Of a DNA stretch of 64,000 bases, positions 19,842 to 28,513 are shown piece by piece (the stretch's first letter is position 1; every line of letters starts with the position of its first letter). The translations under genes were made by a program, and so were the position numbers. The notes below the pieces were generated by a model. The model was not told where the DNA came from. It made no database searches and saw only the letters and a program-made list of their open reading frames with translations. Source of the DNA: Macrostomum lignano (taxonomy: Eukaryota); contig NIVC01001838.1 in NCBI GenBank assembly GCA_002269645.1, forward strand, positions 168,242-232,241. Reading direction: 5' to 3'.

Positions 19842-22800
19842 ATGCAGGAGGCGGAGTCTTCGCAGTCGCTGAACAACAGCCCGGTCAGCAACAGCAGCTT
19901 GTGCGGTGAGCAGCTGCAGCTGGATCACAGGTCCGTAGTGACAGGAATGGTGCTTGGCCTTATCGCCCTGGGCACCGTGTTCGGCAACTCTCTGGTACTG
20001 CTAGCCGTGCTGCTCCACCGCAATCTCCGATCCACCACTGCAATTTTTGTGTCCAACCTTGCCGTAGCCGACCTGTTGCTGGGCAGCTGCGTCTTGCCGC
20101 TGAGCTCCGTGCTGGAGGTGACTGGCGGCTGCTGGCTGTTCGGCCCGCTGCTCTGCGACCTGTGGGCCTGCGTAGACGTGCTCTGCTGCACCGCCAGCAT
20201 CATGTCGCTGTGCGCCATCTCGCTGGATCGGTACATCGGGGTGACCCGGCCGTTGCAGCACTCGCGAATTGTCAGCCATCGCCGGGCCTGCATGCTGGTG
20301 CTGGCCGTCTGGCTGCTGTCATTCCTGGTGTCGGTGGGGCCGCTGCTCGGCTGGCGCAAGTCGCAGGACGGAGAGCAGCGGCAGCAGTGCAACGTGTCCA
20401 ACGATCCGGGCTACATCCTGTTCTCAGTGCTGTTCTCGTTCTACCTGCCGCTGGGCATTGTTGTGTTCTTCTACATTCGAATCTACCGCGAGGCTGTCAA
20501 GCAGAACCGATTCCTGGCCTCCGGGGTCAAGACGACGCGGACAGCCGGGGCCGAGTCCAGGAGCGCCGGCGGCGGCGTCGGTGGCAGCGGCAACGACGGC
20601 GGCGGAGGTGGAAACGGCAGCGACTCGGCCGTGACGCTGCGAGTGCACCGTGGCGGAGGCGCTGGCGCGGCCACGGCGGCCAGGGAGCAGCGGCAGGCCA
20701 GGCTGCAGGTGGCCGGTGAGTGCTTGGCTGGAGGGAACATTTTTACTGCTAAACTGGTGCAAATATCTTAATTGTTCGCTAAGTCAATCAATCAATCCAT
20801 CAGTCAATCAATAAAACAATCAATCAAACAATCAAACAATCAATCAATCAATCAATCAATCAATCAGTCAATCAGTCAATCAATCAATCAGTCAGTCAGT
20901 CAATCAGTCAATCAATCAATCAGTCAGTCAGTCAATCAGTCAATCAGTCAATCAGTCAATCAATCAGTCAATCAGTCAATCAGTCAATCAGTCAATCAGT
21001 CAGTCAGTCAGTCAATCAGTCAATCAGTCAATCAGTCAATCAATCAGTCAATCAGTCAATCAGTCAATCAGTCAATCAATCAGTCAATCAGTCAATCAGT
21101 CAATCAGTCAATCAGTCAATCAGTCAATCAATCAGTCAATCAGTCAATCAGTCAATCAGTCAATCAATCAGTCAATCAGTCAATCAGTCAATCAGTCAAT
21201 CAGTCAATCAATCAATCAATCAATCAGTCAATCAGTCAATCAGTCAATCAGTCAATCAATCAGTCAATCAGTCAATCAATCAATCAGTCAATCAATCAGT
21301 CAATCAGTCAATCAGTCAATCAGTCAATCAGTCAATCAATCAGTCAATCAGTCAGTCAATCAGTCAATCAGTCAATCAGTCAATCAATCAGTCAATCAGT
21401 CAATCAGTCAATCAGTCAATCAGTCAATCAGTCAATCAATCAGTCAATCAGTCAATCAATCAATCAGTCAATCAATCAGTCAATCAGTCAATCAGTCAAT
21501 CAGTCAATCAGTCAATCAATCAGTCAATCAGTCAGTCAATCAGTCAATCAGTCAATCAGTCAATCAATCAGTCAATCAGTCAATCAGTCAATCAGTCAAT
21601 CAATCAGTCAATCAGTCAATCAGTCAATCAGTCAATCAGTCAGTCAGTCAGTCAATCAGTCAATCAGTCAATCAGTCAGTCAATCAGTCAATCAGTCAAT
21701 CAGTCAATCAATCAGTCAATCAGTCAATCAGTCAATCAGTCAATCAATCAGTCAATCAGTCAATCAGTCAATCAGTCAATCAGTCAGTCAGTCAGTCAAT
21801 CAGTCAATCAGTCAATCAGTCAATCAATCAGTCAATCAGTCAGTCAATCAGTCAATCAGTCAATCAATCAGTCAATCAGTCAATCAGTCAATCAGTCAAT
21901 CAGTCAATCAATCAACCAATCCATCAATCAATCAACCAATCAATCGGTCATTCTACGCCATATCTGTAAATTCTCTATGCCAAAGGCAACAGACAGCAGC
22001 TTAGAATGCGCCAGCTGCAAACAGAGAGTCTCTACTCGTGTCCAAAAGTACACACAGTTCGATAGTTCAATATTTGGCCAGAGTCTCCCGCGCGGCTTTT
22101 TTAGAGGGGCGGCGGCCGAGGCGCACGCAGCGCAAACAGTTTGGGGGGGGAGGCCTCCGCCCCATGGGGAAAAGGCAGTTTGGAATCCTCCAGCTCATTC
22201 TTATTCTTCTATTTCTACTATTGGCTTGACTCCCTCTTTCAGCAGCTGCCTGTTCATCTTTCTCTGGCTCTTCCCGGCCGCGATTCAACTCGGGGATCGC
22301 CTGTCCGCCAGGGTTTGCCAATCGTGTTGGGCATTGGATTTCACTGCCTGGCCTACTCGATCTGTCTCTCTTTTTCTGGAAGAGTAAGGTTGCAGATTCT
22401 GCTTCCAGGATTCTTTAAACACGCTAGGACGGGAGAGGCTGGCGTCTTATGGGTTTTCCGAGTTTACTGATATGAGAAAATCGGATGCGGGCTCGGAGTG
22501 AGCCGTTTCTAGGAAACTGAGGATCGAGCGGCTTCTGAGAGAAATTGGCTTGCTGGAACAAGAAAAAATTACTGGAGACGGATTAAAATGGTACTTGGTG
22601 TGTCTGATAGATAGATAGATAGATAGATAGATAGATAGATAGATAGATAGATAGATAGATAGATAGATAGACAGATAGATAGATAGATAGATAGATAGAT
22701 AGATAGATAGATAGATAGATAGATAGATAGATAGACAGATAGATAGATAGATAGATAGATAGATAGATAGATAGATAGATAGATAGACAGATAGATAGAT

Positions 22801-25800: not shown

Positions 25801-28513
25801 TTCAGGTTCGGTTCAGGTTCGGTTCAGGTTCGGTTCAGGTTCGGTTCAGGCTTGGTTGAGGTTTGGTTCAGGTTCCGTTCAGGTTCCGTTCAGGTTCGGT
25901 TCAGGTTCAATGATGTCCAGAATCCTATCTAGGCGGATATTGTGCTATAACAATGCACTGGCACAAAACTTTTTGAATTTCTATATTTCCCATTTTTATT
26001 TGATACATTGTATTTGCTTTGGCGAAAGCTTTCGTTGAGGTTTGCTTGCATCATTTTTAATTATTCACTTTATTTTCGGTTTGTAAACAACACTGCGAGA
26101 ATTCACGTGTGATTTGACTGATCTGGGAAGCCTGATTTTATATAGCCATACCTGTTGGTTATACTTGATGCACCTTAATTGCAATTACTAATCAGGCTAT
26201 AGGCTGTCAATCAAAATATACAGTTCGATAATAACTTCGCAAATTTTTTAATCCTCTTCCAGGCAAGCTGGCAAGATTCAAGCACGAGAAAAAGGCGGCA
26301 AAGACGCTGGGGATCGTTGTTGGCGTCTTCATCTTGTGCTGGCTGCCCTTCTTCTTCTTGTACCCATTCAGTGAGCCGCGCCATTGCACCATTCACTAAG
26401 CTACTATTCACACCAAGCTACCGTTCACCACTAAGCTACCGTTCACCACTAAGCTACCGTTCACCACTAAGCTACCGTTCACCACTAAGCTAGCATTCAC
26501 TAAGCTACCGTTCACACCAAGCTACTATTCACACCAAGCTACTATTCACACCAAGCTACCGTTCACCACTAAGCTACCGTTCACCACTAAGCTAGCATTC
26601 ACTAAGCTACCGTTCACACCAAGCTACTATTCACACCAAGCTAGCATTCACTAAGCTACCGTTCACACCAAGCTACTATTCACACCAAGCTAGCATTCAC
26701 TAAGCTACCGTTCACACCAAGCTACTATTCACACCAAGCTAGCATTCACTAAGCTACTATTCACACCAAGCTACTATTCACACCAAGCTACCATTCACAC
26801 CAAGCTACCATTCACACCAAGCTACCATTCACTAAGCTGCCATTCACACCAAGCTACCGTTCACACTAAGCTGCCATTCACTAAGCTACCGTTCACACCA
26901 AGCTACCATTCACACCAAGCTACCATTCACACCAAGCTACCATTCACTAAGCTGCCATTCACACCAAGCTACCGTTCACACTAAGCTGCCATTCACTAAG
27001 CTAACATTCACACCAAGCTACTATTCACACCAAGCTACCATTCACACCAAGCTACCATTCACACCAAGCTACCATTCACTAAGCTGCCATTCACACCAAG
27101 CTACTATTCACACCAAGCTACCATTCACACCAAGTTACCATTCACTAAGCTACCATTCACTAAGCTAGCATTCACTAAGCTAGCATTCACTAAGCTAGCA
27201 TTCACTAAGCTAGCATTCACTAAGTTAGCATTCACTAAGCTACCAATCACTAAGCTAGCATTCACTAAGCTAGCATTCACTAAGCTAGCATTCACTAAGC
27301 TACCATTCACTAAGCTACCATTCACTAAGCTAGCATTCACTAAGCTACCATTCACTAAGCTGCCATTCACTAAGCTACCATTCACTAAGCTAACATTCAC
27401 TAAGCTACCAATCACTAAGCTACCATTCACTAAGCTACCATTCACTAAGCTAGCATTCACTAAGCTAACATTCACTAAGCTAGCATTCACTAAACCATTG
27501 CAGTGAAGCTTTCAAACTCCGCGCCGCGCCATTGCATCATACTACCTACCGTTCAAACCAAGCTACCGTTCACCACTAAGCTAGCATTCACACCAAGCTA
27601 TTATTCACCACTAAGCTAGCATTCACTAAGCTACCGTTCACACCAAGCTACCATTCACCACTAAGCTAGCATTCACTAAGCTAACATTCACTAAGCTACC
27701 ATTCACTAAGCTGCCATTCACTAAGCTAGCATTCACTAAGCTAGCATTCACTAAGCTACCATTCACTAAGCTATCATTCACTAAGCTGCCATTCACTAAG
27801 CTAGCATTCACTAAGCTAGCATTCACTAAGCTACCATTCACTAAGCTGCCATTCACTAAGCTAGCATTCACTAAGCTAGCATTCACTAAGCTACCATTCA
27901 CTAAGCTGCCATTCACTAAGCTAGCATTCACTAAGCTAGCATTCACTAAGCTACCATTCACTAAGCTACCATTTACTAAGCTAGCATTCACTAAGCTACC
28001 ATTCACTAAGCTATCATTCAATAAGCTACCATTCACTAAGCTACCATTCACTAAGCTAGCATTCACTAAACCAATGCAGTGAAGCCCTAAAACTCCGCAG
28101 AGTCGATCTTCTGCAAGTCCTGCGACATCCCCGAGCTGGTGTTCAAAGTGGCATTCTGGCTGGGCTACTGCAACTCGCTGTGCAACCCGGTCATCTACGC
28201 CTGCTGGAATCGCGACTTCAAGCGCGCCTTCGCCAGCATCCTCACCTGCGACAGGCTGCGCGGTCGGCGCTCCGAAGCGTCGTCCTCCAAGTCGGATCGT
28301 CCTGTTCTGCGACCGCCGCCGCGGCAGCAGCCACTGCGCCACAACCGTCGCCTGCTACAGTCCACCGACTGCGGCACCGACCTCTGCCTGACAGACGATT
28401 CGTACTTTCAAAAGTGCGCCAACTGCCCGGCGGAGAGGCAGCAGAGCCCCCTGCTGAGCCTGATCAGGTTGGCGCAGTCGGGCCCGGGATCGAATCGTCA
28501 CTTGTCGCCCTAA
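19842..28513 (+). CDS. ADRA1: Class A aminergic GPCR, alpha1-adrenergic-receptor-like (exons 19842-20715, 26263-26370, 28101-28513; 464 aa)
   Basis: Seven TM segments; TM3 [27 protein letters not shown]; TM5 [14 protein letters not shown]; ICL3 GVKT...VTLRVHR; TM6 [23 protein letters not shown]; TM7 [20 protein letters not shown]. Phase-1 junctions are consistent. The subtype call is by motif recall, not phylogeny. Confidence 0.8.
20785..21945 (+). repeat. (TCAA/TCAG)n microsatellite in GPCR intron 1
   Basis: Mixed tetranucleotide run. Confidence 0.97.
22608..23265 (+). repeat. (GATA)n microsatellite with embedded (AT)n
   Basis: Direct inspection. Confidence 0.97.
24140..24490 (+). repeat. 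40-bp minisatellite (AGATACCCACCTCACACCCTGCCTCAACCCCTCGCTCACT)n
   Basis: About 8 diverging units. Confidence 0.9.
25040..25910 (+). repeat. GGTTCA/GGTTT(GTTTCA) 5-6/11-bp satellite
   Basis: Direct inspection; in GPCR intron 1. Confidence 0.95.
26390..28070 (+). repeat. 15-18-bp minisatellite (CACTAAGCTACCATT)n in GPCR intron 2, split into two blocks by a unique junction at 27490-27545
   Basis: Direct inspection. Confidence 0.97.

Follow-up and report, generated by a model that had tools for sequence, protein, structure and literature searches.

A probable alpha1-adrenergic receptor gene of the flatworm Macrostomum lignano, with the intron of its family and a tyrosine at position 6.55

Alpha1-adrenergic (alpha1) receptors of Platynereis dumerilii, of Priapulus caudatus and of Saccoglossus kowalevskii were deorphanised by Bauknecht and Jekely in 2017. 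Protostome alpha1 receptors have been known since 2017; in alpha1 orthologues of three invertebrate phyla, noradrenaline is active at nM to sub-uM concentrations and octopamine and tyramine are inactive, and the pairing of ligand and receptor is stable across the alpha1 family and within each family across phyla (PMC5282848). Vertebrate ADRA1 genes carry one coding intron, located "at the end of TM6", the sixth transmembrane helix (TM) (PMC9028965). Flatworm alpha1 receptors are mentioned neither in PMC5282848 nor in PMC10244343, and we found no literature linking Macrostomum with adrenergic receptors. Here, we describe a gene in a 64,000-nt stretch of the genome of the flatworm Macrostomum lignano (contig NIVC01001838.1, positions 168,242 to 232,241; hereafter, the window) that, with a probability we estimate at roughly 0.85 from its sequence, would be a functional alpha1-adrenergic orthologue, belonging to a set of four or more paralogues in this species.

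Based on its open reading frames (ORFs) and spliced translation, the gene occupies positions 19842-28513 of the + strand and consists of three exons separated by two GT-AG introns, each in phase 1 (Table 1). The splice donors are GTGAGT in intron 1 and GTGAGC in intron 2, while both acceptors are CAG after a pyrimidine tract. The uninterrupted coding sequence of 1395 nt gives a class-A amine receptor of 464 amino acids, which is identical over its full length (100% identity, 100% length) to UniRef entry P0001 of M. lignano, an unnamed "G_PROTEIN_RECEP_F1_2 domain-containing protein". Since the protein matches Pfam 7tm_1 with E = 2.8e-74 and human ADRA1A with 1e-93, the reading frame is not a chance one. 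A tblastn search of the 64-kb window returned this single locus and no second copy of the receptor.

The family of the receptor was determined from 122 sequences aligned with MAFFT and trimmed to 340 or 291 columns, from which neighbor-joining (NJ) trees were built with Kimura distances and 200 bootstrap replicates; the clade names are taken from the annotations of the source entries. At both alignment lengths, the receptor falls in an alpha1 clade of 46 sequences (99.5% bootstrap) that includes four M. lignano paralogues, themselves monophyletic at 100%, together with vertebrate ADRA1, with the noradrenaline-activated receptors of Platynereis, Priapulus and Saccoglossus and with echinoderm, rotifer and sawfly sequences. 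Like the Oct-alpha receptors, 5-HT and Tyr-like receptors fall outside this clade. The octopamine-alpha (Oct-alpha) sequences were drawn from a search of a representative library at 50% identity, which yielded a large OAMB-like block; they form a separate clade of 37 sequences (100% bootstrap) that takes in OAMB of Anopheles and Glossina, "octopamine receptor 1" of Patella, Oamb of Lingula and the "No9" receptors of Priapulus and Saccoglossus, without any M. lignano member. A grouping of the M. lignano sequences with Oct-alpha was recovered in 0 of 200 replicates. Additionally, an alpha1 profile built without M. lignano sequences scored the protein at 530.6 bits and an Oct-alpha profile at 397.9 bits, a gap of 133 bits. 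Among the best 120 database matches outside M. lignano, nearly all are annotated as alpha1 or are unnamed, and these matches include the receptors of Platynereis (P0011, 1e-110), Priapulus (P0037) and Saccoglossus (P0038). In the PDB, the best match is human alpha1A (1e-93), followed by 5-HT7 and 5-HT1A (about 1e-72) and alpha2A (7e-63). The initial annotation had proposed a true alpha1 orthologue, a placement that both the trees and the profiles bear out.

Oct-alpha receptors, such as OAMB of Drosophila and Anopheles, "octopamine receptor 1" of Patella and Oamb of Lingula, resemble the M. lignano receptor in several respects. They share with it the tyrosine at 6.55, the TM7 motif WLGYCNS, a CxxC pair in the third extracellular loop (ECL3) and, in the third intracellular loop (ICL3), the motif G(x)KT...TLR(I/V)HR, or more broadly G(x)(K/R)T...TLR(I/V)HRG; Gq/Ca2+ coupling is probably common to both as well. 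Such likenesses would be expected if the receptor were of the OAMB type and its similarity to alpha1 only superficial. Nevertheless, WLGYCNS and the ICL3 motif are equally normal in invertebrate alpha1 receptors: the former occurs in most of those listed, including the three that respond to noradrenaline, and TLR(I/V)H occurs in 25 of 42 alpha1 and 22 of 37 Oct-alpha sequences. Thus, WLGYCNS and GVKT...VTLRVHR were rejected as family markers, each being found in both families. The first had been read as an Oct-alpha or alpha2 trait, which it is not; the second was correctly recognized as present, but its use as an alpha1 cue does not hold. At three other positions the two families do separate, with Pro in alpha1 versus Leu, Phe, Ile or Val in Oct-alpha at 6.56, Val versus Ala at 5.43, and Lys versus Ser at 7.36; the M. 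lignano receptor has the alpha1 state at all of them (P326, V196 and Lys), and P6.56 was seen in no Oct-alpha receptor. With the tree, the profiles, P6.56 and the gene structure described below all contrary to it, an Oct-alpha identity was rejected, and we regard it as exceedingly improbable. An alpha2 identity is not supported either, given the weaker match to human alpha2A than to alpha1A and the presence of coding introns in the gene; ADRA2A is intronless (PMC9028965).

The position of introns was determined by mapping annotated proteins exactly onto their own genomic loci. Intron 2 of the M. lignano gene interrupts the codon of K328, which is position 6.58 and lies ten residues beyond W6.48; the break follows the first base of the codon (26370|26371), i.e., the intron is in phase 1. 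The same codon is split in the same phase in zebrafish adra1bb and in the alpha1 genes of Branchiostoma, Owenia (an annelid), Patella vulgata (a limpet) and Uloborus (a spider), and in each of these five genes it is the only coding intron. The zebrafish gene agrees with the phase-1 intron at the 6.58 codon that the initial annotation had given for vertebrate ADRA1. In contrast, the 6.58 intron is absent from the five Oct-alpha genes mapped, i.e., those of Patella, Lingula, Lottia, Priapulus and Anopheles. The coding regions of the Patella vulgata and Lingula genes are intronless, and those of Lottia, Priapulus and Anopheles have introns in the first (ECL1) and second (ECL2) extracellular loops and in ICL3. 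Patella and Priapulus provide contrasts between alpha1 and Oct-alpha within one genome. The presence of this intron in five alpha1 genes of varied phyla, and in none of the five mapped Oct-alpha genes, makes it a pan-bilaterian marker of the alpha1 family and not a vertebrate peculiarity, as its earlier description as a retained vertebrate intron had implied. Thus, the receptor neither groups with OAMB/Oct-alpha receptors nor shares this intron with their genes.

In the Priapulus caudatus alpha1 gene (L001, at about 3005-3016), a donor G|GTGAGT lies at the 6.58 codon. The RefSeq protein reads ...LPIGEIFSKCK..., versus ...LPIGAVCGEKCK... given by the genomic acceptor (at about 38316-38340), and no pair of splice sites reproduces the annotated junction. 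Because this junction is irreconcilable with the genome, the gene was left out of the count of intron witnesses. Further, 36 database proteins with an alpha1-type TM6 (among P0050, P0073, P0121-P0258 and P0274) end or lose homology right after 6.57/6.58. The pattern resembles what would arise where short contigs are read through into the intron, or where vertebrate genes use alternative 3' exons, and it lends indirect support to a conserved splice site in many further taxa.

Intron 1 (20716-26262), on which the initial annotation did not remark, has no counterpart in any of the five other alpha1 genes mapped (Danio, Branchiostoma, Owenia, Patella and Uloborus). In Anopheles merus Oamb (L008), a phase-1 intron follows residue 244, directly after the ICL3 motif QGFRTTK; because this position differs from that in M. 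lignano, there is no homology between the two ICL3 introns. Given its absence from the five mapped alpha1 genes and its placement unlike that of the Anopheles intron, the ICL3 intron of M. lignano looks like a lineage-specific gain. Both introns and both flanks of the gene consist largely of tandem repeats, in seven blocks whose periods range from 4 to 175 nt and whose copy numbers reach 168, and intron 2 consists almost wholly of a 15-nt repeat in about 106 copies (26388-28069). Spurious long ORFs arise from these arrays, e.g., at 20772-22004, 22583-23299, 24957-25859 and 27638-28342.

M. lignano has at least three more alpha1 paralogues (P0004-P0007), which are encoded outside the window and are 58-65% identical to the receptor by BLASTP. 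All of them have Y6.55, K6.58, the ECL3 CxxC pair and (V/L)RVHRGG in ICL3, the ICL3 of P0007 being frameshifted. A second copy or allele (S16R), nearly identical to this one, is represented in UniRef by the aberrant models P0002, P0003 and P0184: in P0002, ICL3 and ECL3 are skipped via alternative GT/AG sites that lie within the three exons, and P0003 and P0184 are frameshifted. A recently duplicated genome rich in repeats could hold a duplicate that is decaying or has lost its function, and such a gene might be expected to show several copies in one species, models with frameshifts or internal deletions for a near-identical copy, and introns swamped by tandem repeats. However, the 464 codons are unbroken, the splice sites are canonical, and the DRY, CWxP and NPxxY motifs and every residue of the ligand pocket are intact. 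Moreover, 187 columns are invariant across M. lignano paralogues of only 59-68% identity, which indicates purifying selection. Decay is accordingly a very improbable account of this gene, and a functional alpha1 receptor is the reading that we retain.

The three deorphanised invertebrate alpha1 receptors, from Platynereis dumerilii (A0A1J0F5Z2), Priapulus caudatus and Saccoglossus kowalevskii, are 47-51% identical to the M. lignano receptor over 76-84% of the query. The ligand pocket of the latter matches alpha1 at D3.32, V3.33, C3.36, T3.37, Y5.38, S5.42, S5.46, F6.51, F6.52, F7.35, F7.39 and Y7.43, and that of the three deorphanised receptors is the same except at 6.55; WLGYCNS is common to all four. 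Two cysteines are also found in ECL3 of each, spaced as CxxC in Platynereis and M. lignano and differently in Priapulus and Saccoglossus. The M. lignano receptor differs from the three in having Tyr instead of Leu at 6.55, Lys at 6.58, a short ICL3, at least four paralogues and, with the intron layout compared in other alpha1 genes, the extra phase-1 intron in ICL3. With vertebrate ADRA1A/B/D (human ADRA1A structures 7YM8, 8THK and 9M4Q), it shares D3.32, S5.42, S5.46, F6.51, F6.52, F7.39 and P6.56. Vertebrate receptors differ from it in having Met or Leu at 6.55, WLGY(F/L)NS in TM7, no Cys pair in ECL3, and two coding exons instead of three.

Leu or Met at 6.55 is typical of alpha1, although not strictly defining, and it is here that the M. 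lignano receptor departs from it, with Y325. This position discriminates between the two families: in the tree set, 39 of 42 alpha1 sequences from other species have Leu or Met and all 37 Oct-alpha sequences have Tyr, as do all four M. lignano paralogues. Over 226 sequences with an alpha1-type TM6, the residue is Leu in 198, Met in 17, Tyr in 10 and Phe in one; 215 thus have Leu or Met, and the initial annotation had described Tyr6.55 as being of the octopamine/alpha2 type. Tyr6.55 is a real, isolated and lineage-wide departure from the alpha1 norm. The only other members of the alpha1 clade found to have it are the alpha1-like receptors of Branchiostoma (P0109, P0126 and P0312). These amphioxus receptors, which to our knowledge have not been deorphanised, share the phase-1 intron at 6.58 with M. 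lignano; they differ from it in having no CxxC in ECL3 and Ile at 7.35, and their Tyr6.55 arose independently, in a deuterostome lineage.

A further clade in the trees, which we refer to as "No9-like" (87% bootstrap), comprises P0148 (L009) of Lineus longissimus, P0152, P0156, P0159 and P0136. These sequences have Y6.55, Leu or Val at 6.56 and an alpha1-like NPIIYPC in TM7; the one gene examined, that of Lineus P0148, is intronless.

Several points weigh against reading the gene as a functional alpha1 orthologue. The trees are distance-based rather than maximum-likelihood ones, and leave out vertebrate alpha2, beta and dopamine sequences. Tyr6.55 is found in all 37 Oct-alpha receptors sampled, and the 10 occurrences among the 226 sequences with an alpha1-type TM6 comprise six M. 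lignano entries, three from amphioxus and one outside the alpha1 clade. The corresponding tyrosine of the Bombyx Oct-alpha receptor (Y412, 6.55) is listed, in a passage of PMC6114109, as a mutationally characterised octopamine-binding residue. Lastly, no other flatworm appears among the best 120 matches of a profile made from the four M. lignano paralogues, weaker matches being unlisted.

Across phyla, each orthologous family has kept its ligand preference (PMC5282848); on this ground, and provided that the gene is a functional alpha1 orthologue, we lean toward noradrenaline or adrenaline as its preferred ligand. The receptor would bind a catecholamine, most probably one of these two, with the amine held by D3.32, F7.39 and Y7.43, the ring hydroxyls by S5.42 and S5.46, and the ring stacked on F6.51 and F6.52. 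It would couple to Gq and raise Ca2+, like those alpha1 receptors that have been deorphanised in Platynereis, Priapulus, Saccoglossus and vertebrates. Replacement of Leu or Met by Tyr at 6.55 may change the potency or selectivity of agonists, and recognition of noradrenaline need not be lost. Alpha2 receptors have Y6.55 and yet prefer noradrenaline, so that Tyr6.55 is compatible with either ligand. Position 6.55 is not mentioned in PMC13150006.

In the structure of human alpha1A with noradrenaline, the meta-hydroxyl has no polar contact and lies close to M292 (6.55) (PMC10282093). A tyrosine at this position would adjoin the sole group that separates noradrenaline from octopamine. Together with the distribution of Y6.55 described above (37/37 Oct-alpha receptors and 4/4 M. 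lignano paralogues, versus Leu or Met in 39/42 other alpha1) and with the citing of Bombyx Y412 as a determinant of octopamine binding, this proximity would fit a receptor that is alpha1 by descent and has changed its ligand, the L/M6.55Y replacement in all M. lignano paralogues having brought a preference for a phenolamine (octopamine or tyramine) or for dopamine. The gene would then be no sign of noradrenergic signalling. Nevertheless, the mutation M292L did not reduce noradrenaline binding by alpha1A (PMC10282093), all remaining residues of the pocket are of the alpha1 type, P6.56, V5.43 and K7.36 included, and a change of ligand would depart from the stability of preference within families. 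We consider such a shift unlikely, although it carries some weight, and retain a catecholamine as the favoured ligand. It is quite doubtful that the four paralogues represent a natural case of an alpha1 lineage retuned to phenolamines or dopamine, in a flatworm group where alpha1 was retained and multiplied while others may have lost it; were this the case, exchanging the one residue (Y325L, or Leu to Tyr in Platynereis alpha1) would convert a preference for catecholamines into one for phenolamines, or the reverse. In any case, the Tyr6.55 exception offers a concrete and cheap entry, by mutagenesis, to the difference between noradrenaline and octopamine receptors.

The coordinates of the gene, of its diagnostic residues and of the tandem-repeat blocks are collected in Table 1. 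D3.32, S5.42, S5.46, SLDRYIGV, GVKT, VTLRVHR, WLGYCNS and the 6.58 intron had all been read correctly in the initial annotation.

Table 1. Exons, introns, diagnostic residues and tandem-repeat blocks of the M. lignano alpha1 locus (positions in the window).
Feature	Position	Strand	Remarks
Exon 1	19842..20715	+	start codon, N-terminus with N-glycosylation sites, TM1-TM5, most of ICL3
D3.32 (D112)	20175-20177	+	exon 1
DRY	20226-20234	+	exon 1; SLDRYIGV present
S5.42 (S195)	20424-20426	+	inside FSVLFS, exon 1
S5.46 (S199)	20436-20438	+	inside FSVLFS, exon 1
GVKT (ICL3)	20523-20534	+	exon 1
VTLRVHR (ICL3)	20631-20651	+	exon 1
Intron 1	20716..26262	+	5547 nt, phase 1, splits codon G292, GTGAGT...CAG, C-terminal end of ICL3
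Exon 2	26263..26370	+	108 nt; end of ICL3 and TM6, including CWLPFF and P6.56
W6.48 (W318)	26340-26342	+	in CWLPFF, exon 2
Y6.55 (Y325)	26361-26363	+	exon 2
Intron 2	26371..28100	+	1730 nt, phase 1 in codon K328 (6.58), GTGAGC...CAG
Exon 3	28101..28513	+	ECL3 with CxxC pair, TM7 (NPVIY), helix 8, C-terminal tail, stop 28511-28513
WLGYCNS (TM7)	28157-28177	+	exon 3
Tandem-repeat block	19601-19816		
Tandem-repeat block	20784-21945		
Tandem-repeat block	22606-23272		
Tandem-repeat block	24130-24512		
Tandem-repeat block	25035-25907		
Tandem-repeat block	26388-28069		
Tandem-repeat block	28699-29245		

Elsewhere in the window, a 536-aa ORF upstream of the receptor (10828-12438, + strand) contains a Frizzled cysteine-rich (Fz) domain (Pfam, 1.4e-29) and probably belongs, as an exon, to a gene of the Frizzled or sFRP type. 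A 341-aa ORF at 58577-59602 (+ strand) has WD40 repeats (1.1e-21), and a proline-rich ORF of 815 aa at 50163-52610 (+ strand), whose extensin-like match does not reach the Pfam cut-off, is probably derived from repeats. The GC content is 0.30 at 46001-48000, compared with 0.39-0.54 elsewhere in the window.

In the planarian Schmidtea, a 2026 study detected noradrenaline by high-performance liquid chromatography and found rare TH+/TBH+ neurons (PMC13594227); flatworm noradrenergic signalling has thus already been proposed from the side of the transmitter. The scores of the four-paralogue profile drop from 527 to 476 bits, with molluscs and nemerteans coming directly after M. lignano. This hints that alpha1 may have been lost or have strongly diverged in other flatworms and, since no other flatworm is among the best 120 matches, the planarian transmitter evidence may not carry over to M. 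lignano. Among hexapods, receptors of the alpha1 clade are found in the sawfly Cephus cinctus (P0151) and the springtail Orchesella cincta (P0048); an earlier statement that adrenergic receptors were lost in insects holds for most hexapods, but not for these two.

The receptor described here adds a new, unnamed member to a known family and stands out by one unusual residue. An M. lignano alpha1 receptor is in keeping with the noradrenaline recently reported from planarians, and current views are not overturned. The intron at the end of TM6 provides a clean genomic marker separating alpha1 from Oct-alpha across Bilateria, which aids the annotation of invertebrate amine receptors. With this gene as an alpha1 orthologue, the family, already reported in annelids, molluscs, priapulids and some arthropods, would also include a free-living flatworm used as a genetic model.

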